In this document: in pieces, positions 22,301 to 43,991 of the stretch
How positions within the stretch are numbered: position 1 is the stretch's first letter
Layout of the letters: each line of letters opens with the position of its first letter
Assembly: GCA_977017575.1 (NCBI GenBank)
Contig: CDRNVI010000178.1
Coordinates: forward strand, 62,001-126,000
Length of the DNA stretch: 64,000 nucleotides
Source: Paramoeba atlantica
Taxonomy: Eukaryota > Protista > Discosea
Reading direction: 5' to 3'
Program-made: the position numbers and the translations under genes
Notes under the pieces: generated by a model
Seen by the model: only the letters and a program-made list of their open reading frames with translations
Told to the model about the DNA's origin: nothing
Database searches by the model: none

Positions 22301-22824
22301 CCATCTCATCACGGTATTTTCTCTCTCTTTTTCTTTTCTTTTTCTTCCCTTTTTTTTTGCTGACGAAGCTGTAAAAATAGGCAGGAACAAATATTGGGGA
22401 ATGTTGGCCCATGAAAGGAACCAAAGGAAGTGCAATTATCAAATTAGGACAAGTCATTCGCCCGACAGCCTTTTCAATCGATCACACCCGAATGGTGCCA
22501 AAAGATCTTTTGTTCAGTGCCCCAAAGGAAGTGACCGTTTCGGTAAGTTTTTTTTTTGTGAAAAAAAGAAGAAGAATCAATCAATAATTTTATTGAAAAA
22601 AATGTGAATAGGGAGTAAGGAGTTCGGAGGGAGGAGCGCCAGTCTTTGATACTCTTGCCAAGTACACATATGACATTGAGAGTCCCAACATCATCCAAAC
22701 ATTTGAAACAGACACCCAAGAAGGGTACAGTTTAATTCGATTGACTGTGGAATCAAATTATGGTGATCCTGATTTTACTTGTATTTATCGCTTTCGGGTT
22801 CATGGTGTTCCGGTTTTTGGATGA
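19309..22824 (+). CDS. SUN-domain (Sad1/UNC-84) inner nuclear membrane protein, many exons
   Basis: Basic N-terminus, hydrophobic segment, coiled-coil exons, then GYADWALRSAGS, GECWPMKGTKGSAIIKL..PTAFSIDH..SAPKEV and SNYGDPDFTCIYRFRVHG. Stop at 22822-22824. Start codon tentative. Confidence 0.88.
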
Positions 22825-22907
22825 TGAGAGATTTTAAAGTGTGTTGGAAGGTAAAAGTGTGTGTATTATTATAAAAAAACAAGTCAAAAGATAAATAAAG
22901 ACATATT

Positions 22908-23906
22908 TCATTTGTTCTTCTTTTTCTTCTCTCCTCTGACTGACCTATCTTTCTTCTTCCCCTTCAACTTATCTGAGATCTTTCCTTTCTTCTCGGGAGG
23001 GTCCTTTTTCTCGTCAGAAATAACGCACCAGTCATACACACAGTCAAACTCGAATCCCTCACGAATGAACAAGTCACGAAACATCTTTCGAAGATAGGAA
23101 TAATCAGGTTTGTCGAAAAAACGAAGGGATCTCGCATACTTCAAGAAGTTGGTAAATTCGATGGGAAGATTCTTGCAAAGAACTTCGAGAGGTGTTGATA
23201 ATTTTTTGTCAGAGATTTCTTGGTATCTTTGCTTCTTCGTAGCAGCTTGGATCCCTTGCCATGGAAGCCAACCTTTGAAGAGATAAACTAAAATATAACC
23301 CAAGGATTCCAAATCATCCCTACGACTCTGTTCGATTCCAAGATGGGTATAAACGCTGGCATAACGGGCAGTTCCAGTCAAACTCTTGTTCTCACGATAA
23401 GGAATATGTTTTCGGTCTGAATCGCAGTAATATTTTGCCAATCCAAAATCGATCAAATAAATAATTCCACTTGTCTTTTTGACCCCCACAAGCATATTAT
23501 CAGGTTTCATATCACGATGAATAATTCCTTTTGTGTGGACGTACTCCAACCGCCGAATCATTTGATCAGCGATCATTAAAACTGTCTTCAGACTGAAGGA
23601 ACGATTGCAGTAAGTCAAGAGATCTTCCAAATTCGGGCCAAGAAGATCCATTGCCATCAAGTTTTGATTCCCTTGATGTCCAAAGAAGTCAACTTGAGGG
23701 ATTCCAATGCCATATCGCAGTTCACGGAGAATAAGGTATTCATACTGGAGTTGTGGATAAGCGATCTTTGCGTTCTCGACTTTTAATGCCACTTTCTTTT
23801 TGTTTCCTGTATGAACAGCAACATAAATCGCTCCAAAAGAACCTTCTCCTGTTTTTTTAAAGAGTTGATAGTCTCCCCATCGTGTGTGAGCCAGACTTTC
23901 GGCCAT
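22908..23906 (-). CDS. CSNK1: Casein kinase I, intronless, short basic tail
   Basis: GEGSFGAIY, MDLLGPNLEDL, HRDMKPDN, IDFGLAK, TGTARYAS, IEQSRRDDLES, KPDYSYLR. Confidence 0.97.
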   Translation of the reverse strand: MAESLAHTRWGDYQLFKKTGEGSFGAIYVAVHTGNKKKVALKVENAKIAYPQLQYEYLILRELRYGIGIPQVDFFGHQGNQNLMAMDLLGPNLEDLLTYCNRSFSLKTVLMIADQMIRRLEYVHTKGIIHRDMKPDNMLVGVKKTSGIIYLIDFGLAKYYCDSDRKHIPYRENKSLTGTARYASVYTHLGIEQSRRDDLESLGYILVYLFKGWLPWQGIQAATKKQRYQEISDKKLSTPLEVLCKNLPIEFTNFLKYARSLRFFDKPDYSYLRKMFRDLFIREGFEFDCVYDWCVISDEKKDPPEKKGKISDKLKGKKKDRSVRGEKKKKNK

Positions 23907-24123
23907 GACGTTTTCCCTCCCTCGTTGACCAAGGGGTCTCTTTTTTCCAACAAAAAAACAAAAGAAAAGGAAAAAACGAAAAAAAAAAGAAAAGAGGGAC
24001 TAAATTTGGGGCGCTATTTATTTTTTCCTTTTTTCGCGAATTTTGTTTGTTTTTGGTGTGTTGGTTTTTTTTTTTTCGTTTTTCTTCTTTTTGTTTCCTT
24101 TTTCCGTTTCTTTTTTTCTTGTG

Positions 24124-27100
24124 ATGGATGGAACCTGGGACAGAAGAGAAAGAGGACGGAGTCTTAGTCGAAGCCCGAGTCGTAGCCCATCACGAAGTTT
24201 AAGTCGAAGTCCAAGTCGAAGTCGGAGTCCAAGCCGAAGTTTGAGTCGAAGTCCGAGCCGAAGTCGGAGCCTGAGTCCTCGTAGCCGGAGCAGGAGCAGA
24301 AGTAGAAGCAATAGTTTGAGCCCTTCAAAGAGAAATGACGACAATCGTTCCTTCAGAAGAGGGAGAAGTCGCAGCCCAACAAATGAGAGAGAATGGAACC
24401 CACGAATAGAGCAACAACAACACCAACAACACCAACAACAACAACAACAACAACATCATCAATACCATCATCGTGGAAGGGGTCCTTCACCAGGTTATCA
24501 CCATCATGGCGCTCAAGATCGAGGATATTTTGATGATCGAAGTGGTTCTCATTCTTCTTCTTCTTCACATCATCCTCCCTCTTCTTATCAAGATCATCGA
24601 TCGAGAAAACGATTTCGTGATGGGGATCAGCACTCCCATTTTGAGAATCCAGACAAACGCTCTCGCCGTTTTGATTCAGAACGTTCGAGGTATCTCAAAA
24701 ACTCTCTCTTTTTCTTTCATTTTGTTGGAACATTTTCATTTTAGTCTTATTTTGAACCAAAATTTTCTATTTTTTATTTTATTTATTAACTCAAAAAAAA
24801 AAACCAAATAGACAAGGATCTGGTGGAGGACATTGGCATAATGGTGGAGGAAGAAAGAGAGAATTATCTCCTCGTCAAATCCCAGAAAGTCTTTATGATG
24901 CACCTCAGATGACACTTCCTGCATTTTGTCAATACTTTAATGTTCGGGCTGATTTGGCAACACGTTCTTTCCAAGTGTATATTGAGGAACATCAACGTCG
25001 ACGAGACCGATCCTTCTTTAAATCACATGGAGACGAAGAATGGTTCAAAGAAAAATATCAGCCTGATTACCTTGAAACCTTTTCTAAAATTCGCTATGAA
25101 AAATCTCGAAAAGGAGTGGCAGAACTCATTTCAAATCCAACTTTGATTAAACAATGGCCTTCCTTGAACTTTGCTCCAAATGTAGCCATGGAAGAAAATT
25201 TTTCACCCAAAAGACAACCAAAGTCTCCTGATTCACCCCAACTTCCCTCAAAGGAGCCATCTCCTTCTGACCCTTCGACGAATTTGGAAGAAAAAACTTC
25301 TTCTTCTTTATCAGAAGGTGCGAAGAGTTCCTCTCCCACTCCTCCAGACCAAAGTGAAACCAAAGAAAAGGACTCGACAATGGAAGATAGTGATGATGTT
25401 CTCGATGCTCCTCTTCCAATGGATTCAAATACAATGGCAACTGACGAAGATGCGAAAAGAGAGAAGGAGGAGGAGGAGGAGGAGGAGAGAGAAGAGCTAC
25501 CAACAGCAAAACCAGATGCTGAAAAGAAGGAAGTGACTGAAGGATCTCTCTCTTTATCAGCATTGTATGCAACAAATGTCGGAGTGGATATCAAAGAGAG
25601 TGATCTCAGAGAAGCTTTTATCAATGCTGATGGTTGTCAATTGCTTCATCTTGTCATCTCTGATCCAATTCCACAGAAAGGATTTTCAAGGATTGTGTGG
25701 GCGGTATATCGATCACCAGAAGAACGCGATACTGCTCTCTCTCTTCTACAATCCAAATCTCTAAAGTTTGGTGAAGGAGAGGAGCAGTTGGATTTGCGAG
25801 TTCACAAAAATACAGGAAAACAAAGTCTCTTTAAAGAGAATCACAACATCTGTCCTCCTTTAGCTGGAAAACCACAACGCCTCCAACATGATCTTGATAT
25901 TGCTCTCCAAATAATTAAAAAGGTATTCAATTTTTTTTTTAAAATTATCTTTTTTTTTTCTCAGAACGAATTTGATAACTTTTTGTGATTAACGAGATTT
26001 TTCTTTTTTTCCTTTTTAAAAAACAGTTGGATGCTGAAGTGGAAATCAAAGAAAATCCTTTGGATGAGATCAAAGATGATGAAGAAGAAGAGATCTCAGT
26101 TCGGTTGGACCGGCTGTTGAACTATCTTCGAATTATTCATTGCTTTTGTTATTACTGTGGCATTTGGTTCGTCTTTTTTTCTTCTCTTTTTTCTCTTTTT
26201 TCTTCTTTTTTTCTCGAATCAAAAAAAATTTCCTTTTTTTTTTTTTAACCACCCCAAACAATAAACAGGTACCCTAATGAAACTGAGATGTTGAGAAAGT
26301 GTGGAAAGTGTCATGTTCGTCCTTTGTATGAAGAAGGTTCAGAAGTCGTGTCGGATATCGATCAAGACTGGGCTTCGACGTTGAATGATCGTTTGGCGGA
26401 ATTTACATCAAATTCATTTAACCCAGCTTTGAAATTTGGTTCACGGGTTGAAGAACGAGTTTTCCAAGAGTTTTCTGAACAGCACACAGGGCAAGAAGCT
26501 GATAACAAATTTCGATGCAGAGCGACTGATTCATGTAACAAGCTATTTAAGGGAGAAGATTTTCTCCATAAACATTTTCGATTAAAGCACCCTGATTTGT
26601 TAGACGAAACATTCCGCCATGCCAAGAGCGAAGAATCATTCGAAAATTATCACACAGACCCCAAAAAAGTAATTTCTCCTCATCAAACGAAAGATGGAGA
26701 AATTATACATGGAGGAGGAGGTGGTGGTGGTGGGGGAAGAAATCAAGAGTTTGGGACAACACACAGAAACTATCCAATGCGTCCACCAGGTCGATTTGGT
26801 CCTCCTCAACCTGATGCAATGGTCCCTCTTCCATTTCCTCCTTATGGCGGAGGGATGCAACCTTTTCGAAATCATCCTTACCAACAACAACGTGGCGGTG
26901 GTGGTGGTGGTGGTGGTGGTGGTGGTGGTGGTCATCGACGAGATTATCCTGACCCTTCTTTTGAACCTCCTCCCCCTTTTTATCCACCAATGGTTTGGAT
27001 TGTTTTTTTTTGATTTCTTTTGAAACAAGCCAAAGATTCTTTGTTTTGTCTTTTTTTTTTTTAATACCTTTGGCTTTTGTCTGTGGCACAATTTTTTTTT

Positions 27101-28458: not shown

Positions 28459-30251
28459 TTAATTTTCTTGTTTTGTTCGAGCTGGTTTTATCGTTCGTCC
28501 CTACAAACCAAAGAAAAACAATATGAGATAACATTCATTTCCACACTTCATTATTATTCAACTTTCACCCAAAAAAAGAAAATAAAAAATTTGAAGAAAA
28601 GAGAAAAATGTCAAAAAAAAGAGAAGAGAGAAATAAATAAATAAAACCTTTAATCGAATGATCAATTCAACAATGTTCTGATTTTTTGCAACATCAAGAA
28701 CTGTTTTACCATTCTAACAAAAAGAAAAGAAAAGAAAAAGAAAGTTTGAGAAAAGAATCCCCATTCCCCCATTCCCCCACAAATCAACAAGTAAAATTTT
28801 CAATCAATATCAAGAAAGAAAATCAAAACTTGATTTTGAAGATGAATGTTCGATCCATACTCAACAAGAATTTTCACAATTTCTTTAAAACCATTGGAAG
28901 CAGCACAGTGAAGAGCGGTCCAGCCATCCTTAAACAAAAAGAAATTGTTAAAAGAATAAAAACAAAATAAAGATCACACAAACCAACTAAACAACATCAT
29001 GAACAACCAAGAATTTAACCGCACAAATAAAAATGAAATCAAAAAAAAAAGAAAATCAAAACTTTGGTTTGAAGATCAACATTGGATCCATGTTCAAGAA
29101 GAATCTTCACAATTTCTTCAAAACCATAGAAAGTAGCACGGTGAAGAGCGGTCCAGCCATTCTTAACAAAAAGAAGTTGTTAAAAGAATAAAAACAAAAC
29201 AAAAGATCACACAACCACCACATAACATGAACAAGAATGAACATGAGAAATCAAATGAAAAAGAAAGAAAATCAAAACATTGTTTTTAAGATGAACATTG
29301 GATCCATGTTCAAGAAGAATCTTCACAATTTCTTCAGAACCAGAGGAAGCAGCATCGTGAAGAGCGGTCCAGCCATCCTTAAACAAAAAGAAATTTGTTA
29401 AAAGAATAAAACAAATGATCACACCAACACGAACAACAGGAATCATCAAATGAGAAAACAAGTAAAAAAGAAAGAAAATCAAAACTTGATCTTGAAGATG
29501 AACATTGGATCCATGTTCAAGAAGAATCTTCACAATTTCTTCAGAACCATTGGAAGCAGCATAGTGAAGAGCGATCTTTCCAATCTTAACAAAAAAAAGG
29601 TTGTTAAAGATAAAACAAAACAAAAGATCACACAACCACCACATAACATGAACAAGAATGAACATGAGAAATCAAATGAAAAAGAAAGAAAATCAAAACA
29701 TTGTTTTGAAGATGAACATTGGATCCATGCTCAAGAAGAATCTTCACAATTTCTTTAGAACCAGAGGAAGCAGCATAGTGAAGAGCGGTCCAGCCATCCT
29801 TAAACAAAAAGAAATTTGTTAAAAGAATAAAACAAATGATCACACCAACACAAACAACAGGAATCATCAAATGAGAAAACAAGTAAAAAAGAAAAAAATC
29901 AAAACTTCCTCTTGAAGATCAACATTGGATCCATGTTCAAGAAGAATCTTCACAATTTCTTCAAAACCATTGAAAGCAGCAGAGTGAAGAGCGGTCTCTC
30001 CATTCTTAACAAAAAGAGTAGTTGTTAAAAGAAAAAAATGAAAAGAGAGAGAGAGAAAAGAAACAAAAGACAGAAGAAAGAAAATTGTTTTTGAAATAAA
30101 CCTTGTCAGTGAACTTGAAGTTGATATCAAGTTTGAATTGTTTGTTTTCTTTTCCAAGAAGAAGAGCTTTGACAACTTCTTCATCTCCATTCTCAACACC
30201 TTCAAAAAGATTCTTTGTTTCTTTGTTTGGACCTTCTTCTTCTTCGTCCAT
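28459..30251 (-). CDS. Ankyrin-repeat cassette gene A (N-cap exon + 6 single-repeat exons + C-cap + tail)
   Basis: MDEEEEGPNKETKNLFEGVENGDEEVVKALL exon, six 99-nt AG/GT-bounded exons of pattern xGxTALHxAAxxGxEEIVKILLEHGSNVxLQxx, NGKTVLDVAKNQ cap, tail GRTIKPARTKQEN*. Confidence 0.88.
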
Positions 30252-30657
30252 CTTTCTTCTTTGATGTTTTTTTGTGAGACCAAGAGAGAGAGATGGAAAG
30301 GGAAAGAGGGGAAAGGGGGGGAAAAGGAAAGAGGGAAAAAGAAAAAGAGAGAGGGACACCGTGAAAATGATGTCCCCTTTTTCTCTTTTGAACTTTTTCG
30401 AAAAAGTTGAGAAGTTTTGACTTTTCAACTTCAAAAATCTCAAACCTCAAATGATTGAGAGGAGAAAAAAGAAGGAAAAGAATCAAAAAGAAAAATGATG
30501 GTGAAAGGAGTTTTTTTCCATGTTTTTTTCCATTTCAAAAATTTGAAAAATGGTTCTATTTTGTGTCTCTCTGTTTCTTTCTCCCTCTCTCTGTCTTTTT
30601 CCCCTCTTCTCCCCTCCTTCTCCCTTTCTCGATTTCTATTCTCAAACTCTCAAATAT

Positions 30658-32660
30658 TTAATTTTCTTGTTTTGTTCGAGCTGGTTTTATTGTTCGTCCC
30701 TACAAACCAAAGAAAACAATATGAGATAACATTCATTTCCACACTTCATTATTATTCAACTTTCACCCAAAAAAAGAAAATAAAAAATTTGAGAAAAGAA
30801 AAATGTCAAAAAAAAGAGAAGAGAGAAATAAATAAATAAAACCTTTAGTTGAATGATCAATTCAACAATGTTCTGATTTTTTGCAACATCAAGAACTGTT
30901 TTACCATTCTAACAAAAAGAAAAGAAAGGAAAAAAAAAGTTTGAGAAAAGAATCCCTCCAATCCCCTCCCAACTCCCATCCCTCTTTTCCCCCCTTCCCC
31001 CCTTCCCCCATTCCCCCCACTCCCCCACCACACAATCCAACAAATCAACAAGTAAAATTTTAAGTCAATATCAAGAAAGAAAATCAAAACTTGATTTTGA
31101 AGATGAATGTTGGATCCATACTCAACAAGAATTTTTACAATTTCTTCAAAAGCATAGGAAGCAGCAAGGTGAAGAGCGGTCAAGCCATCCTTAACAAAAA
31201 GAAGTTGTTAAAAGAATAAAAACAAAAGAAAGATCACAACCAATAAAACAACATGAACATCCAAGAATTTAACCACAACACAAAGAAAATCAAAACTTCA
31301 GTTTGAAGATCAACATTGGATCCATGTTCAACAAGAATTTTCACAATTTCTTCAAAACCATTGGAAGCAGCTTTGTGAAGAGCGGTTAAGCCATACTTAA
31401 CAAAAAAAGGTTATTAAAAGAATAAAAACAAAATAAAGATCACACAGCCAACAAGAATTTAACCACAACAAATAAAATGAGAAATCAAAAAGAAAGAAAA
31501 TCAAAACATAATTTTGAAGATCAACATTGGATCCATGTTTAAGAAGAATCTTCACAATTTCTTCAAAACCATTCTCAGTGGCAAGGTGAAGAGCAGAGCC
31601 ATACTTAACAAAAAGAAATTGTTAAAAAAATAAAAACAAAATAAAGATCACACAACCAATAAAACAACATGAACATCCAAGAATTTAACCACAACACAAA
31701 GAAAATCAAAACTTCAGTTTGAAGATCAACATTGGATCCATGTTCAACAAGAATTTTCACAATTTCTTCAAAACCATTGGAAGCAGCAAGGTGAAGAGCG
31801 GTCAAGCCATACTTAACAAAAAAAGGTTATTAAAAGAATAAAAACAAAATAAATATCACACAACCAACAAGAATTTAATCACAACAAATAAAAGAGAAAT
31901 CAAAAAGAAAGAAAATCAAAACATAATTTTGAAGATCAACATTGGATCCATGTTTAAGAAGAATCTTCACAATTTCTTCAAAACCATTCTCAGCAGCAAG
32001 GTGAAGAGCAGAGCCATCCTTAACAAAAAGAAATTGTTAAAAAAATAAAAACAAAATAAAGATCACACAACCAACAAAACAACATGAACATCCAAGAATT
32101 TAACCACAACACAAAGAAAATCAAAACATAATTTTGAAGATCAACATTGGATCCATGTTTAAGAAGAATCTTCACAATTTCTTCAAAACCATAGGAAGCA
32201 GCAAGGTGAAGAGCAGAGCCATCCTTAACAAAAAGAAATTGTTAAAAAAATAAAAACAAAAGAAAGATCACACAACCAATAAAACAACATGAACATCCAA
32301 GAATTTAACCACAACACAAAGAAAATCAAAACTTCAGTTTGAAGATCAACATTGGATCCATGTTCAACAAGAAGCTTCACAATTGCTTCAGAACCTTTCT
32401 CAGCAGCTTTGTGAAGAGCGGTTATTCCATACTTTAAGAAAAAAAGAAGTTGTTAAAAAAAAGAAACAAAGAACCAAGAGAGAACAGAAGAAAGAAAGGT
32501 TTTGAAAAACCTTGTCATCAAACTTGAAGTTGATATCAAGTTTGAATTGTTTGTTTTCTTTTCCAAGAAGAAGAGCTTTGACAACCTCTTCATCTCCATT
32601 CTCAACACCTTCAAAAAGATTCTTTGTTTCTTTGTTTGGACCTTCTTCTTCTTCGTCCAT
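30658..32660 (-). CDS. Ankyrin-repeat cassette gene B (7 repeat exons)
   Basis: Same architecture. Three exons are 96 nt (one codon deleted, xG-SALH). Repeats 3-4 and 5-6 look like a duplicated pair. Confidence 0.88.
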
Positions 32661-32845
32661 CTTTCTTCTTTGATGTTTTTTTGTGAGACCAAGAGAGAGA
32701 GAGAGAGAGAAAAGAGAGAGACAAGGTGTTGATATTTTGTTTTTTTTGGATGAGAAGAGAAAATGGACAAATGGTTTGGAGGGACACATCAATAATGGTG
32801 TCCCCTCTTCTTTTTCTTTTTCTCTTTCACAAAAACGCAAGAAAG

Positions 32846-34263
32846 ATGGACAAAGAAGAAGAAGGTCCAAACAAAGAAACAAAGAATCTTTTTGAAGGTG
32901 TTGAGAATGGAGATGAAGAAGTTGTCAAAGCTCTTCTTCTTGGAAAAGAAAACAAACAATTCAAACTTGATATCAACTTCAAGTTTGATGACAAGGTTTA
33001 TTTCAAAAACAATTTTCTTTTTCCTTTTTTTTCTCTCTCTCTCTCTTTTCATTTTTTTTTTAACAACTTCTTTTTGTTAAGTATGGAGAGACCACTCTTC
33101 ACAAAGCTGCTGAGTATGGTTTTGAAGAAATTGTGAAGATTCTTCTTGAACATGGATCCAATGTTGATCTTCAAACTGAAGTTTTGATTTTCTTTCATAT
33201 TGATTTTCATTTCTCATTTGATTTGTTGTTGTTCATTCTTGGTTGTTCATGTTGTGTGATGGTTGGGTGATCATTTGTTTTTTCTTTTTTCTTTTCACAA
33301 CTTCTTTTTGTTAAGTTTGGCTGGATCGCTCTTCACTCTGCTGCTTACGGTGGCTTTGAAGAAATTGTGAAGATTCTTCTTAAACATGGATCCAATGTTG
33401 ATCTTCGAACCGAAGTTTTGATTTTCTTTCTTGATTTTTCATTTCTTATTTGATTTGTTGTTGTTAATTCTTGGATGTCCATGTTGTCCTGATGGTTTGT
33501 GTGATCTTTTGTTTTGTTTTATTCTTTTAACAACTTTCTTTTTGTTAAGTTTGGCTTGACCGCTCTTCACTTTGCTGTTTCCAATGGTTTTGAAGAAATT
33601 GTGAAGATTCTTCTTGAACATGGAGCGAACATTCATCTTCAAAATCAAGTTTTGATTTTCTTTGTGTTGTGGTTAAATTCTTGGATGTTCATGATGTTGT
33701 TCTGATGGTTGTGTGATATTTATTTTGTTTTATTCTTTTAACAATTTCTTTTTGTTTAAGTATGGAGAGACCGCTCTTCACTATGCTGCTTCCAATGGTT
33801 TTGAAGAAATTGTGAAAATTCTTGTTGAGTATGGATCGAACATCCATCTTCAAAATCAAGTTTTGATTTTCTTTCTTGATATTGATTGAAAATTTTACTT
33901 GTTGATTTGTTGGATTGTGGGTTAGGGGAATGGGGGAATGGGGGAATGGGGATTGGAGGGATTCTTTTCTCAAACTTTCTTTTTCTTTTCTTTTCTTTTT
34001 GTTAGGATGGTGAAACGGTTCTTGATGTTGCAAAAAATCAGAACATTGTTGAATTGATCATTCAACTCAAGGTTTTATTTATTTATTTATTTCTCTCTTC
34101 TCTTTTTTTTGACATTTTTCTCTTTTCTTCAAATTTTTTATTTTCTTTTTTGGGTGAAAGTTGAATAATAATGAAGTGTGGAAATGAATGTTATCTCATA
34201 TTGTTTTTCTTTGATTTGTAGGGACGAACAATCAAACCAGCTCGAACAAAACAAAAAAATTAA
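32846..34263 (+). CDS. Ankyrin-repeat cassette gene C (4 repeat exons)
   Basis: MDKEEEGP start; repeats YGETTLHKAAEYG, FGWIALHSAAYGG, FGLTALHFAVSNG, YGETALHYAASNG; tail GRTIKPARTKQKN*. Confidence 0.88.
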
Positions 34264-34598
34264 AGATATAAAATTTTGAGAATAGAAATAGAGAAAGGGA
34301 GAAGGAGGGGAGAAAAACGGAGAGACACGAAATAGAACCATTTTTCAAATTGTTTCAAAAAACGGAAAAAAAACATGGAAAAAAACTCCTTTCACCATCA
34401 TTTTTCTTTTTGATTCTTTTCTCCTCTCAACCATTTGAGGTTTGAGATTTTTGAAATTGAAAAGTCAAACTTCTCAACTTCAAAAAAGTTCAAAAGAGAA
34501 AAAGGGGACAGCCTTTTTCTGGTGTCCCTCTCTCTTTTTCTTTTTCCCTCTTTCCCTTTCCATCTCTTGGTCTCACAAAAAAACATCAAAGAAGAAAG

Positions 34599-36121
34599 AT
34601 GGACGAAGAAGAAGGTCCAAACAAAGAAACAAAGAATCTTTTTGAAGGTGTTGAGAATGGAGATGAAGAAGTTGTCAAAGCTCTTCTTCTTGGAAAAGAA
34701 AACAAACAATTCAAACTTGATATCGACTTCAAGTTCACTGACAAGGTTTATTTCAAAAACAATTTTCGTTTTCCTTTTTTTCTTTCTCTCTCTCTTTTTT
34801 CATTTTTCTTTCTTTCTTTCTTTCCTTTTCTCTCTTGGTTCTTTGTTTCTTTTTTTTAAATTTCTTTTTGTGAAGGAGGAAGTGACTGCTCTTTACTGTG
34901 CTGTGAGCAAAGGTTTGAAACAAATTGTGAAGATTCTTCTTGAACATGGATCCAATGTTGATCTTCAAACTGAAGTTTTAATTTTCTTTGTGTTGTGGTT
35001 AAATTCTTGGATGTTCATGATGTTTTGTTGGTTGTGTGATCTTTATTTTGTTTTTATTCTTTTAACAATTTCTTTTTGTTAAGTTTGGCTGGACTGCTCT
35101 TCACTATGCTGCTTCCTATGGTTTTGAAGAAATTGTGAAGATTCTTCTTGAACATAGATCCCATGTTGATCTTCAAGAGGAAGTTTTGATTTTCTTTCTT
35201 TTTGATTTCTCATTTTATTTGTTGTGGTTAAATTCTTGTTGGTTGTGTGATCTTTATTTTATTTTTACTCTTTTAACAACTTCTTTTTGTTAAGTATGGC
35301 TTGACCGCTCTTCACTATGCTGCTTCCAATGGTTTTGAACAAATTGTGAAGATTCTTCTTAAACATGGATCCAATGTTGATCTTCAAACCGAAGTTTGAT
35401 TTCTTTTTTTTTGATTTTTGATTTTTCATTTCTCATTTGATTTGTTGTTAAATCTTGGATGCTCATGTTGTTCTGATGGTTTGTGATATTTATTTTGTTT
35501 TATTCTTTTAACCACTTCTTTTTGTTAAGGCTGGAAAGACCGCTCTTCACTATGCTGCTTCCTCTGGTTCTAAAGAAATTGTGAAGATTCTTCTTAAACA
35601 TGGAGCCAATGTTGATCTTCAAAATTATGTTTTGATTTTCTTTCTTTTTCATTTGATTTCTCATGTTCATTCTTGTTCATGTTATGTGGTGGTTGTGATC
35701 TTTTGTTTTGTTTTTTCTTTAACAACCTTTTTTTTGTTAAGATTGGAAAGACCGCTCTTCACAAGGCTGCTTCCAATGGTTTTGAAGAAATTGTAAAAAT
35801 TCTTGTTGAGTATGGATCCAACATTAATATCCAAACCACAGTTTTGATTTCTTTTTTGATTTTTTAAAGAAATATTTTTGTTCCCACTTTTTACTTGTTG
35901 GTTCTTTTTCAAACTTTCTTTTCTTTTTGTTAGGGTGGGAAAACAGTCCTTGATGTTGCACAAAATCAGGACATTGTTGAATTGATCATCCAATTGAAGG
36001 TTTCATTTTTTTTTTGGTTGAAGTTGACGATTAATCAAGTGTGGAAATGAATGTTTTTTCTCATATTTTTCTTTGATTGTAGGGACGAACGATAAAACCA
36101 GCTCGAACAAAAGGAAAATAA
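34599..36121 (+). CDS. Ankyrin-repeat cassette gene D (5 repeat exons)
   Basis: Repeats EEVTALYCAVSKG, FGWTALHYAASYG, YGLTALHYAASNG, AGKTALHYAASSG, IGKTALHKAASNG; tail GRTIKPARTKGK*. Confidence 0.88.
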
Positions 36122-36336
36122 AGTTTTGAGAGTTTGAGAAAAAAAATAGAATTAGGATGGGAGGGATAAGTTCACAACAAATGTAGAGACACAAAGAAGA
36201 AAATAAAGAATCAAAAAACAAATGACAAAAGGAGGTTTCTCATTTGTGGTTCCCAAATATTAATAATAAAAAGAAAAATAAAGTGTTCTGCTTCTCAAGA
36301 GAAGAAGACATTGTTGTTGTTGCGAGTTGGTTTGAA

Positions 36337-36774
36337 TCAATTTCTTTCTCTTTTTGCGGGTTTGAGAAAAACTCTCAAATTTTCTTTGAAAAATTGGTCA
36401 ATTTGTGGGATCATCTCAGAATTCTCCGAAGAACCAAACCCCCAAACACATCCCCTTTCTTTCAATTTCAATCTTTCAATGATTTGATCTTTCATAAAAT
36501 GATCAGAAGAATAAACCCAAACAAAAACAAACATTCCATCAATTCCTCCATCAATTTGAGAAACAGCTTCTTCAAAAGAGTTGATCGAATCTTCAAAGAG
36601 CTCTTCGGTCCGAAAAATATTCCTTGGATAGAAAAGAATTCCTTGGCTGTCGTGTTCCGAAATCTGATCTGAAGCAATAAAACTAATTTTTTCTGAATTC
36701 AATATTCCAACAATCATCACAGAACCTCCAAGAACTAAAATGGTTGGCTTTGTTTCTTTTGAATCAGAAGCCAT
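36337..36774 (-). CDS. Hypothetical ~145-aa alpha/beta protein ending in FLKPAKRERN
   Basis: Uninterrupted ATG ORF with protein-like composition. No family recognised. Confidence 0.55.
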   Translation of the reverse strand: MASDSKETKPTILVLGGSVMIVGILNSEKISFIASDQISEHDSQGILFYPRNIFRTEELFEDSINSFEEAVSQIDGGIDGMFVFVWVYSSDHFMKDQIIERLKLKERGCVWGFGSSENSEMIPQIDQFFKENLRVFLKPAKRERN

Positions 36775-37021
36775 CAATCATCAAAAGCAAACCTCTCTCT
36801 CGGAATTGGGTTTCACAAAAAAAACAGAAAAACAGGTGTCCTGTATGGTGTCCCCTTCCAATTACCAAAAACAGACATTGGTGTCCTATTTTTTGGGTGT
36901 CCCCTTCTTTTTTGTTTTTCTCTTTCCTCTTTTTCTCTTTCCCTCTCTTTCCTTTTGTCCTTGTTTTCTCCTCTTTTGCCGAACTTTTTTTTGGTTTGGA
37001 AGAGTGGGAGGGATTTAAACC

Positions 37022-38227
37022 ATGTCATCAGAAGACTCACCAAAAATGAAGTTGTCAAACATTCACAGAGAGAAATTAATTTCCCTCTTGAAGAGAATGA
37101 TGGACCAAGAACGAGCAACGGTCGCAATCTCCCCATACCAACAACAAGAAGGATTTTGGTTTGGAGGTGGAAATGTCGTTGTTGAAGATGATTGTCTTTG
37201 GCTTGTTGGTCGTTTTCGAAACTTTGGTGACTCAAGAACAGGATTGAAAGCGGGTCTTCGTGGATTGGAGTGCGCTCTCTTTCGTTCTGATAATCAAGGC
37301 AAGTCATGGGAAAAAGTTCATAGTTGGACGAAAACTCAATTGTCACAATTTTCTGAATCAAAGATACTCTCTATTGAAGGGACTGATCTCCATCGATTAA
37401 AAGATGGGAATTGGGAGTTATTCATCTCATCTGAAAAAGAGGTGAAATATCCTGTAGACCTTGCTTCTTACCAAAAACCTGGAACAGGGATTTGGTCTCT
37501 TGACTCACTGAGAGCACCTTCTGTGTTAGAACTTCACCCTCGAACTTTGACTCCCCTTCATTTGAGAGGCCATCCTGATCTTCAAGGAGAAGCGGAAAAT
37601 GAAGAGCGTGAAGCAGTCCATCTTCATCTGAAAGATCCAGTTTTGTTTGACATTGAATCAAAAAGTCACGTGACTGCTCTCTTCTTCTGTACTCACCCTT
37701 ATTCTTGGACATCAAGTAATACTGCAATGGCAATCCGAACAACCTTACCCACAAAACCCACTCCAACAAAAGAAGATTTTCGAGTGGATACATGGCAAGT
37801 GGTCGGGCGAGGAAGTGCATGGGATGTGGCAGTGACTCGCATAACATGCAGAATTCCAATCCCGCATTTGGGAATTTTTGCTTCATTACCACCTTGTTCT
37901 GTTTATCTGTATGATGGAGCAGAGTGTGTTCGAGAACACCAACAAAGTCAAAAAGGACATCATCGTGCAAGGGGGTATTCTTGTGAAGAAATAGGAGGAG
38001 CTTTTTTTGGTTGGGATCATGAATTTCCTTCCTTAACTCGTTTATCAGATCTCTCTCCTTTCTTTGAATCACATCAAGGAACTGGGTGTAGCCGATATGC
38101 GAGTGGAACTTTTCTCCCTTCAGGTTTCTTGATGACATGGCAACAGAGCCAAAATGACAAATCACAACCTTTAGTATCACATTTTCTCCCAATGGCAGAA
38201 ATTGAAACAATACTTTCAAAAGACTGA
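37022..38227 (+). CDS. Intronless Asp-box (BNR) beta-propeller, sialidase/glycoside-hydrolase-like, resembling prokaryotic conserved hypotheticals
   Basis: Asp-box FRSDNQGKSW; GFWFGGGNVV; SIEG; HLKDPV; YDGAECVREH; GTGCSRY; TWQQSQ. 401 aa. Confidence 0.7.
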   Translation: MSSEDSPKMKLSNIHREKLISLLKRMMDQERATVAISPYQQQEGFWFGGGNVVVEDDCLWLVGRFRNFGDSRTGLKAGLRGLECALFRSDNQGKSWEKVHSWTKTQLSQFSESKILSIEGTDLHRLKDGNWELFISSEKEVKYPVDLASYQKPGTGIWSLDSLRAPSVLELHPRTLTPLHLRGHPDLQGEAENEEREAVHLHLKDPVLFDIESKSHVTALFFCTHPYSWTSSNTAMAIRTTLPTKPTPTKEDFRVDTWQVVGRGSAWDVAVTRITCRIPIPHLGIFASLPPCSVYLYDGAECVREHQQSQKGHHRARGYSCEEIGGAFFGWDHEFPSLTRLSDLSPFFESHQGTGCSRYASGTFLPSGFLMTWQQSQNDKSQPLVSHFLPMAEIETILSKD

Positions 38228-38288
38228 AAAAAAATTATTGTTCATGATGATTGGATTTTTATTTTTGTTTTGGTTTTTTTGGGAATTG

Positions 38289-40519
38289 TTATTTAGGATT
38301 AATGAGGGAAAAAATAGCGCGAAGGCGAGTGGAAAAGTCAAGACCATAGATAAGTGAGACCAACCCAGTTCCAAATGTTAAACTGCCACTTTGGAGGGGA
38401 TATTGCATAATTTTTGGGATAGTTGTTCGAATAAATGATGTCTGTCCACTCATTTTAATTTTGTGTCATCAAAAAAGTTTTAAAATCAAAAGAAAAAAAG
38501 GTAAATAACCTGATCAAGAACAACTGATTTTTGCAAACACAGCGCTTGTAAGCCTTCTGGTCCTGCAAAACGGCCAAATCCTGAGTGTTTCACTCCTCCA
38601 AAAGGCAATGATTGAACAAGATAATCTGGAATTAAAAAAAAAAATTAAATTTAAAAAAAGGGTTTCTTTTTGATAAAATCTTCCTTCAAAAAAAAAAAAG
38701 CAAACTTGTTGCAAAGTCATTGACACAAGTCATACCAGCTCGAATGCGTTGTCCTAATTGTTCACCTCTAGAATCACTTTTACAAAATACACACGACCCC
38801 AACCCAAAATCGGAGTCATTTACGATACGGAGAGCCTCTTCAGCATCTTTTACACGAAAGATAGTCATCACAGGTCCAAACACCTCTTCTTTGGCAATCC
38901 TCATGTCTGGGGTAACATCCGCAAGAACTGTTGGGAGATAAAATAATCCATTTGGGAGAGTCTCATTTCTTTTTCCTCCTGCCAGAAGCTTTGCACCTCG
39001 TTCAACCGCATCATTGACTAATGATTGGATAATATCTAATTGTTGAGGAGTTACCATGGCACTGACGTCCACATTACCGCTGCCACCAGCGCCTTCACTG
39101 AGAGCGGGTCCTTGACGAAGTGCTTTCACCTTCTCAGCCACTTTACGAACAAATTCATCATATAGGCGCTCATGTATAATAATTCTCTCGATTCCACAAC
39201 AATTTTGGCCTGAATTTTGAAAAGTGCCTCTCATAGCAATTGGAATACACGCATCAACTTCAGCATCTTCTAGTATCACCATCGGGTCTTTTCCTCCAAG
39301 TTCCAAAACAACTGGTTTTAAGTGCTAGGGGGGCAGGGGTGAGAAAAGAAAAAGAGAAACTCTTCGAAGAATAAAAATGAAAAGAATTTAGACAGACAAC
39401 AACCTTTGATGCCCCTTCCATCACAAGTTTTCCAATTTGAGGAGAACCAGTGAAAAGAATTTTATCAATATCAGGACAGTCCACGAGAGCAGCTCCTGTT
39501 CCACCAAAACCAGTCACAACCTGTGTGTTTAAACAACATTGGGAAAATCAGACATGTCTCCCCTTTCAAAAAAAATAAAAAAAATGGCTCTTTCTTTTCG
39601 CAAAAAAAAAATATACCTGAACAAGGGAAGGATCATGTCCTTCTACACGAAGAGCTTCATGGACAATTCGGAGGAAGTAAGATGAACTCCAACTCGTATA
39701 TTCACTCACTTTGACAACCACTCCATTTCCAGCAAAGATTCCTGAAATGATGTGGTTATACCTAAAAATAACTATGAATAAGGGAACATTTTTTTGTCAT
39801 TCAAAAAGAAGAGGGGGAGGTGCAAACAAGTTATGAAAGGGATAATTCCAAGGAGCGATGACCCCAATTACACCGAGCGGATGATATTCCACAAAAGCTT
39901 TCTTGTGAATTGTCATCAGACTTGTTGGTCTTTCCTGTCTCTGGAGAGCCTCTTCTCCGTGTTTGACAACATAGGAGATTTTTTCACTATTTTTTGGGGG
40001 GATTAGCCTTTCATCTCAAACAAAAAGAGAGTCAAGTTGGTGGTGGTCAAACCAAGTGGTGATAATTTCTCCAAGTAAAGCATCAACAAGAGGTTTTCCA
40101 GAATCACGAGAGTCGACACGACAAATTTCTTTTTGGTGTTGGAGGATATACTTTTGAAGAATGAGAAGGACTTGACGACGCTGTTCAAAAGAAGTCGTGG
40201 CCCAAGTTTTTTGAGCCACTTTGGCTTCTGCTGCGATCCGATACACTTCCTCTCGATCCATTGCCTTGACCACTCCGAGAGAACAACCAGTTGCAGGGTC
40301 ATAACAATGGACCACGTTTGGATCCTCCTCTTTATGAATGGCCATCGAATCTGATCTTTCTTTTGACACATGGACCTCTTCAGAAGCTTCAAGGTCGTTC
40401 AACGGAACCTGGATTGTTGGGACTGTTTTCTTCCTTAAAATGGAAACTGTAAAAGCAATCACCAGAAATGTGACAGCAATCCCAATGGACATACCCATTG
40501 AAAGAAAAATTTCCACCAT
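38289..40519 (-). CDS. ALDH22A1: Aldehyde dehydrogenase family 22 (ALDH22A1/Msc7-like) with an N-terminal membrane anchor, multi-exon
   Basis: N-terminal TM; VHCYDPATG; [17 protein letters not shown]; FTGSPQIG; ELGGKDP; catalytic GQNCCGIER; EEVFGPV. Confidence 0.88.
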
Positions 40520-40689
40520 CTTGAATGCCCAAAACCAACAGGGAGAAGAAGAAGGAAGGGGTGTGGGAGGGTGAACACCGAACCAAAACGGAAAAAGGAG
40601 GGTTCGACAAAAAACGCGTGGTGAAAAATCAAGAGCTCTAATTTTAGAGCGCGACTCCCAAAACTCTTTTCTTGCTTTTCGAGAAATTT

Positions 40690-42652
40690 TTATTTTGGTT
40701 GGAAGGGGGCTGTTGCTTGGCTGTGGATTCTTGAATTGAGTTCTGATAAGTGGGCCATGAACTCCTTTGCTCTTTCATTTTGACCCAATTCTCGGAGCGC
40801 ATTGACCATCAAAGAGTAGCACCTCATTAAACCAACGTGATCCTGAATTTTGTGATTGTAATCGATTGCCTCTTGTAAAAGTTCGGTCGCTCTTTGAGGC
40901 TCTGAGGAAATTTTTAAGGCACCAAGATCACAAAGAGCCGACTTATAGATTTCTAGATCTCGATCTTGGCTCAATTCAAGAGCTTTCTGAAAATGACTTT
41001 CAGCATCTGACTCATTTCCAAGATCAAAATTGAGTTTTCCGAGATATAAGCGCCCCATTCCTTCGAGCTCGGTCATTTGAGTAATTTCTGCCTTCTTTGT
41101 GAAAAAATCATGAGCTAGTTGAAGATGGGCACTTGCAATATCGAAATTCTTCAAAATTCGGTGGAGATTCCCAACAAAGAGGAGGCACTTTGTTTGGAGA
41201 ACAACCAATTCAAATTTTCGAGAAATCTTTTTTGTATGTGTCAGGGTGAGAACAATGATGGGATCCAAAAAAAGAACAAAAAAAGTCTCTTAACTGCTAA
41301 TCCTTCTTGGTAATGGCGTAAGGCTTCGTCTTTAAGATTTAAGAATTCTTTGATCTGACCCATTTTACAATGCGATTCAATTTGACAAGAAGCGAGTTGA
41401 CATTTGATCACAAAATCCAACGCCTTCTGATGTTGTTCAATCGCAGTTTCAAACTGATCTGTATGGTTTTTTTTTGTTGAGAGAGAGATAAAAATCAAAT
41501 TTGAGAAAAAAGAGATAAACTTAATTTGACTGAACAGTCAGCAACGAGAGTCATTCCTTCCCAGCAGGGTCGATTTTGGAAGAATCTTTTGCTTTCTGCA
41601 GCATACTTCTCAAACTCGCTTTTGGCGCTCTTGTATCGTTTTCTTTTCATCACCTAAAAAAATTATAGATTAAAATCTTTTTTCATTTCTTTCTATTTTC
41701 TTTTCTTTCTTCTCAGCATCGTCATACCACATCCCCAAGAACACGAAGAGTGTGCAAGTATTCCTCCAAATAATTTTGGCCAGTGACAACGTTTTTGTAG
41801 TGCTGAGCTGCTACTCTTAAATGCTCTTCAGCCTATTCGAAAAAAAAGGGGTTTTAAGAGATAAAAATTCCTCCAATTGCAAGAACAAAGAAAAAGAAAC
41901 TTGGTCAAAATCACCAATACTCCCAAGAATAATTCCGTATTGTGAATTGATTTTTCCAGAGAGCCCGTGATCGACTGGCTCAACCTGGTCTGCCAATTGT
42001 AAACATGAGATAAACACTCTCTTTGCTTCCGGAATATTATTCTCTGCTGCGTATCTCTATTATGACAGGGGAGCATAATTTTGTGTCAATAACCATCCTG
42101 GAACAAAAAAAAAAGAGAAGAAGGAGGAATTCAAACCCTTCCTTGAATTTGAAGCTCATAAGCCTTCGTCAATTGCTCAAAGGTTTTTTTTCTCTGTTTT
42201 TCTATTTCTTGTTTCTCAACCTCAGACTGCTTTTGCGTGTGTTTTGCTTTTTTTTCTTTCATCCTACAGGAAAAAAAAAAACTCAATGCCTGCAACCAAA
42301 AAATTATGAAAAAAAAAGAAAAAAAACCAAAAATCCTTTACCTCAACATGAATTTCGCTTCATCTTCTTTCAATCCACCTTTTTGGCAAACCAACATAAT
42401 AAGTGGACCAACAACCATTTGGTGCTCAGTATCACCAAGACTTTCATAAATATCGAAAGCTTTGGAGAGACATTTCAAGGAACCCTGATAATTCTGTGAT
42501 TGAAAATGAAGCCGCCCTTCTTCACAAAGCTCTTTTGCTCGATCATTTTCAGGTGAAGTTGCAGAAGAAAGAAAGCGATTAATTGACCCAACCCTTGATT
42601 GGGAAGCGAAAACTCTTGCTGATCGGGAGACTAAACAAGGGAGACGGGACAT
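40690..42652 (-). CDS. TPR-repeat protein with a putative mitochondrial presequence, multi-exon
   Basis: Arg/Ser-rich, acid-free N-terminus (MSRLPCLVSRSARVFASQSRVGSINRFLSS). TPR-like helices such as ARLYLGKLNFDLGNESDAESHFQKALEL and ALRHYQEGL. Confidence 0.75.
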
Positions 42653-43991
42653 GGCCTGAGGAATTCCGTTTCCGTTTCACTCGAAAAAAAAAAAGGGAAC
42701 AAAACCACTCCAACCCTAATTTGGTGTTCTTTTGGTTCTCCTCTTTTGGTTTTTGGGCTTCCTTGGAGGCAACAAACGGAGATGCTGCAGGAGCAGCAGT
42801 TTCTTTTCTTTTCAAAGATGGTTCCCCATCATGTCCAAGAAACAACAAAAAAGAAACAAAACAAAACAAGGTCATTTTTTTCCCAAAGAAGAGGGTTGAG
42901 AATCTGTCATCTTCACCGCAGAGTCTGCCGCTCAGGTGACTCAACCTCCTGCTTGATTGGTGCTGGTCAATCCCTGTGCGAGAAGAAGACCGAGAAAACA
43001 GCAGTATGAACTTTGGGAGTTTCTTTTGACGCCTTTTGACTTGTGCAATGCCCACCACCAATAACAGTTTATTGAAACAGCCTTGAACAGCCTGCTTTGG
43101 CAATGTTGCTTTGCTTATTGATGGATCTTGTACTTTTATACAAGAATTTAAGTCACATCTTTGGCTCAGCGGTTTATATCTGTCTCTTGACCCTCACGAC
43201 CCACCTACAGAAAGCAAAAAGGTAAGATAAGTCAAATTTGTTCTCTCAAGAAGCTCTGATGAAGCAAAACTTCTCAAAAGACATTTTGATGAGTGATACT
43301 TGGATGCCTCATCTGATTTTTCTAAGACTTTCTGTATTCATGTTGGCATGAGTCAACATGAGTTGGGTGTGGTCCTCTGGACATTGAAGAACTTTAAACA
43401 TAAACTCTGTGAGTGTGACCCAATTATCTTTTGTGATTGTGACCCAATTGTCTTTTGTGATTGTGAGGCTTTAAAGACATTGTTTTTGTGTGGATCACAA
43501 AAAGGTTGCTTGAAGAAATCTTTGTTGAACAATGAGGAAAGAGAACAAGGTTGAGGTTGTTGGCCAACAACCTCAACATCTTTGTTGGTGTTGCAAGCAC
43601 CCAGATGTGTACAACTTGTTGAAAAACATGCTTTGTTTTATTTTTGAGATTATGTCAAATTCAAATTCCTCTGGAGCTCTGGAAATTGGTGGAAATGGAA
43701 ATATATTGAATAGTTGGTGTGATGTTTTGGGAGGTGAGGAAGAGAAGGAGTGTTGGATTGAATATTTTGATAGAAAGTGTTTGAGATGTCATGAACACAC
43801 TCAATTCAGTGATTTTGGAGGGGAGCTTTTTGAAAGTTGAAGAGAAAAGGGGAGAGAATTTCTCTCAAGAGAACAGCCCAATACTTTCTAATGATTTGGT
43901 TGATAGTATTGGTCACAGAAATAGATTTGAGCTGGGGGGGTAGGGGGGTGTTGTCAAAGAACAAATGGTTCACTGCATTCTTGAATAAAGG

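Follow-up and report, generated by a model that had tools for sequence, protein, structure and literature searches.

Lamprey and hagfish VLRs, which are made of LRR cassettes, are assembled somatically from an incomplete germline gene and promoter-less donor cassettes. Vertebrate ankyrin genes show an exon-per-repeat organization. The DARPin library positions used for comparison below are reportedly those of the Binz design of 2003. Introns at repeat borders, a pattern that fits growth by exon duplication, are described for repeat-protein genes by Street, Rose and Barrick (2006, J Mol Biol 360:258), according to the account of that work in PMC5100051. In the fungal NOD-like receptors (NLRs; Podospora nwd/het-e), ANK, TPR and WD repeats show near-identity and concerted evolution, their number is polymorphic among isolates, and copies move both inside a gene and from one family member to another (Dyrka et al. 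2014, PMC4986451; Paoletti et al. 2007).

Here we analyze a 64-kb stretch of Paramoeba atlantica DNA (hereinafter designated the window) containing four ankyrin genes, A to D, whose evolutionary regime matches the one already described for the ANK/WD/TPR repeats of fungal NLRs. Unlike those receptors, genes A-D contain neither a NACHT or NB-ARC domain nor an N-terminal effector domain and leave no room for a NOD; the internal amino-acid identity of 64-76% lies under the >85% criterion of the fungal set; each repeat occupies one exon with a homologous intron; and the host is a protist rather than a fungus.

Architecture of the cluster and its proteins

The four genes are intact neighbors arranged as an imperfect palindrome (<A <B C> D>; Table 1), in which the N-cap exons of B and C are 99% complementary over 161 nt and flank a 185-nt head-to-head spacer. 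Around the cluster lie ordinary genes (Ars2/SERRATE, a kinase, a WD40 protein, an aldehyde dehydrogenase and a TPR protein), and a database look-up of the left-flank ORFs at 24909-25985 and 26288-27010 recorded no match. The palindromic motif GGGACA-N12-TGTCCC has three matches in the 64 kb against none expected, all three in promoter regions of the cluster. The same motif precedes gene D' on a second version of the locus described below (contig L002, 1771-1794).

Table 1 Coordinates of the ankyrin genes, their exons and the palindromic motifs in the window.
Feature	Position	Strand	Remark
Gene A	28459..30251	-	6 internal exons
A N-cap	30102-30251		
A1	29906-30004		
A2	29700-29798		
A3	29486-29584		
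A4	29279-29377		
A5	29063-29161		
A6	28830-28928		
A C-cap	28648-28713		
A tail	28459-28500		GRTIKPARTKQEN*
Motif	30353..30376	.	about 100-125 nt upstream of the ATG of A
Gene B	30658..32660	-	7 internal exons
B N-cap	32511-32660		
B1	32333-32431		
B2	32128-32223		96 nt
B3	31923-32018		96 nt
B4	31713-31811		
B5	31508-31603		96 nt
B6	31297-31395		
B7	31091-31189		
B C-cap	30843-30908		
B tail	30658-30699		
Motif	32781..32804	.	single one in the common 185-nt spacer of B and C
Gene C	32846..34263	+	4 internal exons
C N-cap	32846-32995		
C1	33082-33180		
C2	33316-33414		
C3	33550-33648		
C4	33761-33859		
C C-cap	34006-34071		
C tail	34222-34263		
Motif	34505..34528	.	upstream of D
Gene D	34599..36121	+	5 internal exons
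D N-cap	34599-34745		
D1	34876-34974		
D2	35084-35182		
D3	35295-35393		
D4	35530-35628		
D5	35742-35840		
D C-cap	35934-35999		
D tail	36083-36121		

The 22 internal exons (6, 7, 4 and 5 in A, B, C and D) are 99 nt long in 19 cases and 96 nt in three, and each is bordered by AG upstream and GT downstream with whole codons inside. Codon boundaries also mark the ends of the N-cap exons (150 or 147 nt) and C-cap exons (66 nt), which places all introns in phase 0; their donor and acceptor sequences are nearly invariant (GTTTTGATTTTC ... TTTTTGTTAAG). Each internal exon hits the PF00023 Ank profile above the curated cut-off of 21.1 bits, from position 1 (or 2-4) to position 31-32 of 33, with scores of 29.6-39.6 bits for five of them. 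Because these matches span nearly the whole profile in each exon, exon borders are repeat borders. All the countable claims hold of an earlier note on this DNA, which described four paralogues with one repeat per phase-0 internal exon, and the N-cap and C-cap peptides that it quoted are present in genes A-D.

Intron positions coincide with repeat borders as in other exon-per-repeat genes, but here the introns are still homologous across repeats (mean identity 82%, range 64-99%) and a single culture contains two versions with different arrays, which argues that the duplication process is current and not ancient. This intron homology makes a ~210-bp cassette, an exon with its following intron, the unit that evolves. 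Nucleotide identity (79-86%) exceeds amino-acid identity (64-76% as within-gene mean, range 52-97%; framework alone 81%). The pairs B3/B5 and B4/B6 are 96-97% identical, indicating that a two-cassette unit has been tandemly duplicated in B.

The best PDB matches include ankyrin-1/2, DARPins and designed ankyrins. The N-cap exon can be aligned over its residues 13-32 with residues 6-24 of two designed ankyrins, 4gpm and 4hb5 (E about 4e-5), a segment that we take to be the N-terminal cap. A Pfam search of the N-cap and C-cap gave no match for either, nor did a PDB search with the 22-residue C-cap, which may represent a truncated repeat, judging by its GxTxLDxA motif. The proteins appear to have a genuine cap-repeats-cap organization, resembling that of DARPins, with an N-cap, n near-consensus 33-residue modules and a C-cap. 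Unlike the man-made proteins, the amoeba family has an extra conserved tail exon, a fifth exon type absent from the earlier note (GRTIKPARTK.., 12-13 codons), which is the final exon in all four genes and is conserved across the whole family.

From ATG to stop, the coding exons reveal no signal peptide and no domain besides the N-cap, repeats, C-cap and tail, which suggests that these ankyrin-only proteins are cytosolic. With neither a signalling nor an effector domain in the proteins, no output arm is visible for an 'immune' role.

A second version of the locus and cassette exchange

A second version of the locus was found on two ENA contigs, L002 and L008 (genes hereinafter designated A', C' and D'). 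Both versions are represented in the same read sets: the variants specific to L002 are exactly the 'other letters' of X1-X3, at similar depth. Between the window and the second version, collinear flanks of at least 8.7 kb and 15 kb are 99-99.5% identical (0.5-1% different), whereas the arrays differ by 17-20%. Gene A' (L008) has eight cassettes compared with six in A; by best cassette match (94-98%) they read A1-B1-B2-B2-B3-B4-A5-A6, with a B1-B4-like block in place of A2-A4. Gene C' (L002) has five cassettes compared with four in C, with no recognizable correspondence between the two outside the last cassette (93% identical) and the C-cap. In the comparison of D with L002, D1-D3 are replaced: identity is 73-87% over 34750-35550 and about 100% from 36050 onward, and the D'4 cassette is 98.1% identical to A4 and only 93% to D4. 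In both versions, no damage is seen to any of the 22 exons, the caps or the splice sites.

A PHI-type recombination test on the cassettes was significant, none of 2000 permutations being as extreme as the observed value. Together with the differences in cassette number, whole blocks and short patches, this result supports reassortment at the DNA level by gene conversion or unequal crossover. The earlier note had proposed this very route, in agreement with what the two versions show. Repeat-number polymorphism and inter-locus exchange, seen in the B-like block of A' and the A4-like cassette of D', are features shared with fungal NLRs. As in VLRs, a repeat-protein binder is diversified by gene-conversion copying of cassettes between constant caps; unlike VLR genes, the genes here are complete in the germline, with their own promoter region and caps, and the differences seen are inherited. 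The last cassette (..VEYGSNI..) holds a fixed position in all genes and both versions, so cassettes are not freely interchangeable. The interpretation put forward in the earlier note stands in part, as to surface diversification and reassortment.

The contigs L002 and L008 could represent an allele or a recent segmental duplicate, the depth pattern being compatible with both. We consider it unlikely that the second version is a paralogue created by recent duplication of the segment, or an assembly chimera, in which case no allelic turnover would be shown. The two contigs do end at the same base within the repeated N-cap exon, and unitigs specific to the window reach roughly half the shared-flank depth, which fits duplication and heterozygosity equally. 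Moreover, the C'-D' spacer is 92.6% identical to the window C-D spacer, which the paralogous A-B spacer resembles just as closely (93.0%), and it is equally far from the two paralogous spacers, so that old balanced haplotypes and recent conversion are inseparable. By contrast, the window has no second copy of the flanks, the flanks are collinear at near-identity over many kilobases, and short contigs restricted to divergent stretches are, we infer, typical of second-haplotype contigs. Even a duplicate with such flanks and 20% divergent arrays would still demand recombinational replacement. A second candidate allelic pair, L004 and L007, was dropped because these are paralogous arrays without unique flanks.

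Diversification of the predicted binding face

Per-column entropy over the 22 exons is highest at positions 8, 3, 1, 33, 12, 32 and 11 (2.7 to 1.3 bits) and does not exceed 1 bit in most framework columns, in agreement with the description in the earlier note of positions 1, 3, 8, 11-12 and 32-33 as hypervariable within a near-constant framework. The accompanying statement that these are mostly DARPin library positions holds for five of the seven natural hot spots. Unlike DARPins, the family varies positions 8 and 32, which lie outside the reported DARPin library, and keeps a conserved Q at exon position 31, which corresponds to library position 33. The predicted placement of variable sites on a concave face comes from alignment to the DARPin module and from helix periodicity (positions 8, 11 and 12 correspond to i, i+3 and i+4).

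Among the 22 cassettes, dN at the DARPin-mapped sites is 0.56 compared with a dS of 0.18, an intron K of 0.20 (intron alignments contain indels) and a framework dN of 0.09. For 94 cassettes from eight loci, the ratio of dN to global dS is 3.8-5.2 at positions 1, 3, 8 and 11, 2.2-2.7 at positions 12, 32 and 33, and mostly <1 in the framework; tree-based substitution counts ignore recombination. Ten independent near-identical cassette pairs display 0.174 surface non-synonymous differences per site, compared with 0.031 for synonymous, 0.078 for intron and 0.025 for framework sites (Fisher p = 2.5e-5 for the seven sites of the earlier note, picked from these very sequences, and p = 0.006 for six DARPin sites fixed in advance). 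Between B3 and its counterpart, 1 of 159 intron sites and no synonymous site has changed, yet codons 11-12 carry 4 base differences. Codons of the binding face change 2-5 times faster than synonymous and intron sites, while the framework is constrained. As judged from codon sequence, selection is shown to favor change at the beta-turn and inner-helix residues of a predicted concave binding face and to keep the framework, so that, as in fungal NLRs, predicted concave-face positions appear to be under positive selection.

Neutral concerted evolution, in which conversion homogenizes the cassettes and the surface is merely unconstrained and has no adaptive meaning, would accommodate the evident recombination among cassettes and their higher identity at the nucleotide than at the amino-acid level, and homogenization may account for part of the framework identity. 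However, relaxed constraint would bring dN at most to about dS, whereas the surface excess over synonymous and intron rates is found in tree-free pairwise estimates and near-identical pairs alike, and exons, caps and splice sites remain intact in both versions. We thus consider this explanation very unlikely.

Family, expression and predicted role

Eight family loci (L001-L008) were retrieved, with genes that are complete with caps and splice sites; their number, together with very high unitig depth summed over the framework, suggests a large family. Summed unitig depth, which is not equivalent to copy number, hints at tens to about 100 genes with several hundred cassettes. Neither JGI metagenomes nor IMG/VR yielded a relative of the N-cap, and its derivation from a giant virus or a metagenomic source gained no support. 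A literature search returned no paper connecting ankyrin families with Paramoeba-like amoebae, and phrase searches on one-repeat-per-exon ankyrin genes were blank.

A probable RNA run (X5, 43-64-nt unitigs) covers exon bins only and includes one spliced exon-exon junction, of a paralogue. One exact 51-nt unitig match to D5 or D'5 weakly shows transcription of genes A-D. A JGI transcriptome assembly of the same strain yielded no family transcript with the N-cap peptide or a 38-nt degenerate framework pattern; a spliced contig of this transcriptome (L009) is 99.5-100% identical to exons at window positions 19236-23954. Family transcripts may be missing from the assembly through low expression or assembly failure on repeats, and we do not read their absence as silence.

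Cassettes might also be skipped or chosen in splicing to give many binders per gene, as the symmetric (phase 0-0) internal exons and almost invariant donor and acceptor sequences would allow. This has little probability, given that none of the X5 unitig joints listed falls on exon borders of non-adjacent cassettes of the same gene and that the diversity observed sits in DNA. A housekeeping adaptor or scaffold (e.g. cytoskeletal or trafficking), in which surface differences are long-fixed repeat specialization, is hardly credible, common as adaptors are among ankyrin-only proteins and ordinary as the surrounding genes are, since repeat number and content differ between versions with 99-99.5% identical flanks, the family seems large, and the searched metagenome and virus collections hold no N-cap relative.

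Our favored reading, which we hold to be probable, is a large lineage-specific family of small ankyrin-only proteins in which cassette recombination and surface selection yield a highly polymorphic germline binder repertoire with a putative role in foreign-molecule recognition. Each protein comprises an N-cap, 4-8 internal repeats, a C-cap and a constant basic tail. With phase-0 exons and cassettes that are 80-98% alike, misaligned recombination or gene conversion would add, delete, swap and patch repeats in frame, presumably inside single genes, among genes A-D and from one palindrome arm to the other. Diverse targets would be bound by the variable face, one common partner or location may be contacted through the invariant caps and GRTIKPA tail, and the functional role would be to recognize changing, probably foreign molecules; endosymbionts, viruses or prey as targets are speculation. 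Differences at the block level and on the binding face between the two versions mark a fast-diversifying inherited binder set. It is doubtful that the cluster is, beyond this, a dedicated diversity generator, in which frequent, possibly mitotic block and micro-conversion, perhaps multiplied by frame-neutral exon skipping, would let clonal lineages keep making new intracellular binders, an ankyrin-based, NOD-less counterpart in a protist of VLR or chicken-Ig conversion.

The two versions provide a concrete, testable picture of cassette exchange in ~1-kb blocks and few-base patches. If the favored reading is true, an amoeba has independently reached the DARPin layout of constant caps, consensus modules and few variable surface sites, and the regime of fungal immune-like receptors (concerted evolution, diversifying selection and repeat shuffling) operates in free-standing binders without a signalling domain. 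The family would then offer stable binder scaffolds from nature and an entry point to an unexplored question, molecular discrimination by endosymbiont-bearing, microbe-eating amoebae.

Architecture of the four ankyrin genes

Four complete ankyrin genes, A to D, are arranged in the order <A <B C> D>. Each begins with an N-cap exon, 49 codons long in D and 50 in the others, followed by a series of internal exons (6 in A, 7 in B, 4 in C and 5 in D), one C-cap exon of 22 codons and one tail exon of 12-13 codons (GRTIKPARTK..), the last absent from the list in the earlier note. Nineteen internal exons are 99 nt long and three (B2, B3 and B5) are 96 nt; all have AG and GT at their borders and an integral number of codons, which places every intron in phase 0. 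Pfam Ank (PF00023) recognises every one of the internal exons above its curated threshold, the match running from approximately position 1 to 32 of the 33-position profile, and the top solved-structure matches are ankyrin-1/2 and DARPins. [quoted passage not shown] Exon mapping, together with the Pfam and structure matches, thus confirms the earlier description of the genes (their number, exon numbers, exon lengths, phase and caps) on all countable points.

Between internal exons lie 18 introns of 107-136 nt, which are mutually homologous, with a mean identity of 82% (range 64-99%), indicating that the repeated unit is an exon-plus-intron cassette of ~210 bp. Clustering of the cassettes does not follow gene of origin. 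The last cassettes of all genes (..VEYGSNI..) form a separate group, so the last cassette keeps its position, and certain first cassettes likewise group together. In gene B a unit of two cassettes has recently been duplicated, B3/B5 and B4/B6 being 96-97% identical. The last intron, preceding the C-cap exon, contains a G-rich (GGGGAAT)n-like coding-strand tract in C, A and B, not in D.

B and C stand head to head with 185 nt between their start codons, their N-cap exons are 99% complementary across 161 nt, and the A-B spacer is 93% identical to the inverted C-D spacer; the locus is an imperfect palindrome. The exact palindrome GGGACA-N12-TGTCCC occurs in three copies in the 64-kb window versus 0 expected, each placed 65-145 nt upstream of the start codon of an ankyrin gene; B and C have one of them in common. 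A further copy lies upstream of D', the counterpart of D in a second version of the locus, and none was found upstream of more distant family members on contigs L001 and L003-L007. The motif is a candidate shared promoter element of the A-D sub-cluster.

Coordinates of features in the window and on related ENA contigs
Feature	Sequence	Positions	Strand or remark
Ankyrin genes A-D	window	28459-36121	
401-residue ORF	window	37022-38227	directly right of D
Kinase gene	window	22911-23906	- strand
G-rich tract, gene C	window	33913-33950	+ strand
G-rich tract, gene A	window	28755-28785	complement
G-rich tract, gene B	window	30940-31030	complement; expanded
GGGACA-N12-TGTCCC	window	30353-30376	
GGGACA-N12-TGTCCC	window	32781-32804	
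GGGACA-N12-TGTCCC	window	34505-34528	
GGGACA-N12-TGTCCC	L002	1771-1794	
TRIM-like gene and F-box ORF	L004	2648-4511 and 12021-12206	
Five-cassette family member	L003	14439-15193	

Cassette exchange seen in two versions of the locus

The second version lies on two contigs of ENA assembly ERZ24900291, L002 (12 kb) and L008 (65 kb). The 401-residue ORF, which has no Pfam match, is unchanged on L002, and the left-flank kinase ORF is found on L008. Window and second version differ at ~45 positions in 8.7 kb of right flank (36000-44760) and at 147 positions in 15.4 kb of left flank, compared with 204 positions in 1 kb inside 34750-35750 and ~170 per kb in the internal cassettes of A; the last cassette, C-cap and tail of A and D are 97-100% alike. 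Both contigs start at the identical base within an N-cap exon (CTTGGAAAAG..), corresponding to ~32939 (L002) and ~30158 (L008) in the window. The cassette count of each gene is therefore complete, and the 5' N-cap half plus promoter seems to be a repeat that breaks the assembly. B' and the palindrome centre are missing from the contigs.

A has 6 cassettes in the window and 8 in A', and C has 4 versus 5 in C', where nothing but the last cassette (93%) and the C-cap can still be recognised as the same. D and D' have 5 each, the first three without a counterpart above 89%, and D' includes an exon of 102 nt. When each cassette is assigned to its best match with introns included, the order in A' is A1(96%)-B1(95%)-B2(96%)-B2(96%)-B3(98%)-B4(96%)-A5(96%)-A6(98%), indicating replacement of A2-A4 by a ~1-kb block of B-type cassettes. 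The fourth cassette of D' is of the A2/A4 type, 98.1% identical to A4 across 259 nt and 93% to D4. Between B3 and its counterpart in A', 1 of 159 intron sites and no synonymous or framework site is different, against four bases in codons 11-12 (EN to SY); the SY motif occurs in neighbouring cassettes. Mosaicism is supported by a PHI-type test of 28 local cassettes, in which none of 2000 permutations was as extreme as the real data. Block replacement, the A4-type cassette in D' and this test together bear out, at the DNA level, the repeat reassortment suggested in the earlier note.

Read sets X1-X3 cover introns and spacers and hence behave as DNA, and the 'other letters' on their unitigs are exactly those by which L002 departs from the window (35848 +T, 35883 C>A, 35887 C>T, 36037 A>G, 34146 +T, 34202 and 34214). 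These read sets also contain intron unitigs specific to the window, their depth being about half that of the shared flank, so both versions coexist in the same samples. We read them as two haplotypes; the second version may instead be a recent segmental duplicate. The C'-D' spacer is as distant from the window C-D spacer (92.6% identity) as is the paralogous A-B spacer (93.0%), making old balanced haplotypes and recent arm-to-arm conversion both possible. With 99-99.5% identity in the flanks, an array difference of 20% cannot be due to point mutation: whether the haplotypes are old or the conversion recent, cassettes were exchanged.

Diversification of the predicted binding face

Entropy among the 22 exons is highest at positions 8, 3, 1, 33, 12, 32 and 11. 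The equation of such sites with those randomised in DARPin libraries holds for exon positions 33, 1, 3, 11 and 12, which we take to be library positions 2, 3, 5, 13 and 14 (Binz et al. 2003 design); positions 3, 11 and 12 align to sites that differ between DARPin modules. It fails for positions 8 and 32, which vary here though fixed in DARPins, and for library position 33 (exon position 31), a conserved Q in this family. Positions 8, 11 and 12 (i, i+3, i+4 on helix 1) would have one helical face in common.

Nei-Gojobori estimates, pooled over pairwise comparisons of the 22 exons, give a dN of 0.77 at the seven sites named in the earlier note and 0.56 at six DARPin-mapped sites, with a dS of 0.18 over all sites, an intron K of 0.20 (from alignments containing indels) and a framework dN of 0.09. 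In line with the check proposed in that note (high dN/dS at surface sites), surface dN exceeds dS; it also exceeds intron K, and framework dN falls below both. In a larger set of 94 cassettes of 99 nt, from the window and seven same-family ENA loci, changes were counted by parsimony on a single tree, an assumption violated by recombination; the ratio of dN to global dS is 4.5, 3.8, 5.2, 5.1, 2.7, 2.6 and 2.2 at positions 1, 3, 8, 11, 12, 32 and 33, respectively, and below 1 at most framework positions. The cleanest test uses ten independent near-identical cassette pairs, mostly counterparts between the two locus versions, in which differences per site are 0.174 for surface non-synonymous, 0.031 for synonymous, 0.078 for intron and 0.025 for framework non-synonymous changes. 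Surface versus pooled neutral differences give a Fisher p of 2.5e-5 for the seven sites, chosen from these very sequences, and of 0.006 for the six DARPin sites fixed beforehand. Between cassettes, nucleotide identity (79-86%) is higher than amino-acid identity (64-76%). Relaxed constraint alone cannot yield the observed ratios, which show, at the sequence level, diversifying selection on the predicted binding face. With this selection and the reassortment of cassettes, the proposal of a modular, diversifying recognition system is partly supported.

Transcription, relatives and known repeat systems

X5, a probable RNA run, covers exon-containing bins, its depth falling to zero where a bin is intergenic or holds intron alone. 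At 33176 a loose end passes directly from the end of one exon to the first bases of another cassette (..CAAAC/CAAATATGGA), which is a spliced junction from a paralogue; the family is thus transcribed and spliced. A 51-nt unitig exactly matches D5 or D'5 and nothing else among the loci compared; transcription and splicing of D itself are weakly indicated. A spliced JGI transcriptome contig (L009; jgi:3300017035, 3714 bp) is 99.5-100% identical to exons of neighbouring genes (window 19236-23954), so a transcriptome of the same strain is present in the JGI collection. No family transcript was found there with the N-cap peptide or framework DNA pattern, owing either to low expression or to assembly failure on repeats. 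L009 links the kinase gene to a convergent Sad1/UNC gene and shows introns of ~65-70 nt in these neighbouring genes.

Contigs L001 and L003-L007 carry genes of identical architecture, frequently paired, with more divergent caps and the same GRTIKPA tail. On L004, a RING/B-box/NHL (TRIM-like) gene and a small F-box ORF flank another family cluster; the window neighbours are ordinary genes (Ars2/SERRATE, kinase, WD40 protein, aldehyde dehydrogenase and TPR protein). One L003 member, with five near-identical cassettes (..TALHFAAKKGSKEIVEILIEHGASIHL..) and introns of only 65 nt versus the usual 107-136 nt, is a very recent local amplification of a shortened cassette. Searches of JGI metagenomes and IMG/VR found no relative of the N-cap, and a one-cassette word-index search matched only ENA fragments of this assembly and one unrelated ankyrin protein.

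The family shares its architecture with DARPins, which are synthetic. Its cassette conversion between caps resembles that of lamprey VLRs, which are assembled somatically from an incomplete gene, whereas every family gene here is complete. Its evolutionary regime matches that of the WD, ANK and TPR repeats of fungal NOD-like receptors, which are near-identical, polymorphic in number, exchanged within and between loci and under positive selection on the concave face (PMC4986451), but A-D have no NOD or effector domain and their internal identity is below the 85% used in that study. Exon-per-repeat genes are already known, as cited in PMC5100051 (Street et al. 2006); this family is unusual among them in that its introns remain similar and the process can be seen still at work.
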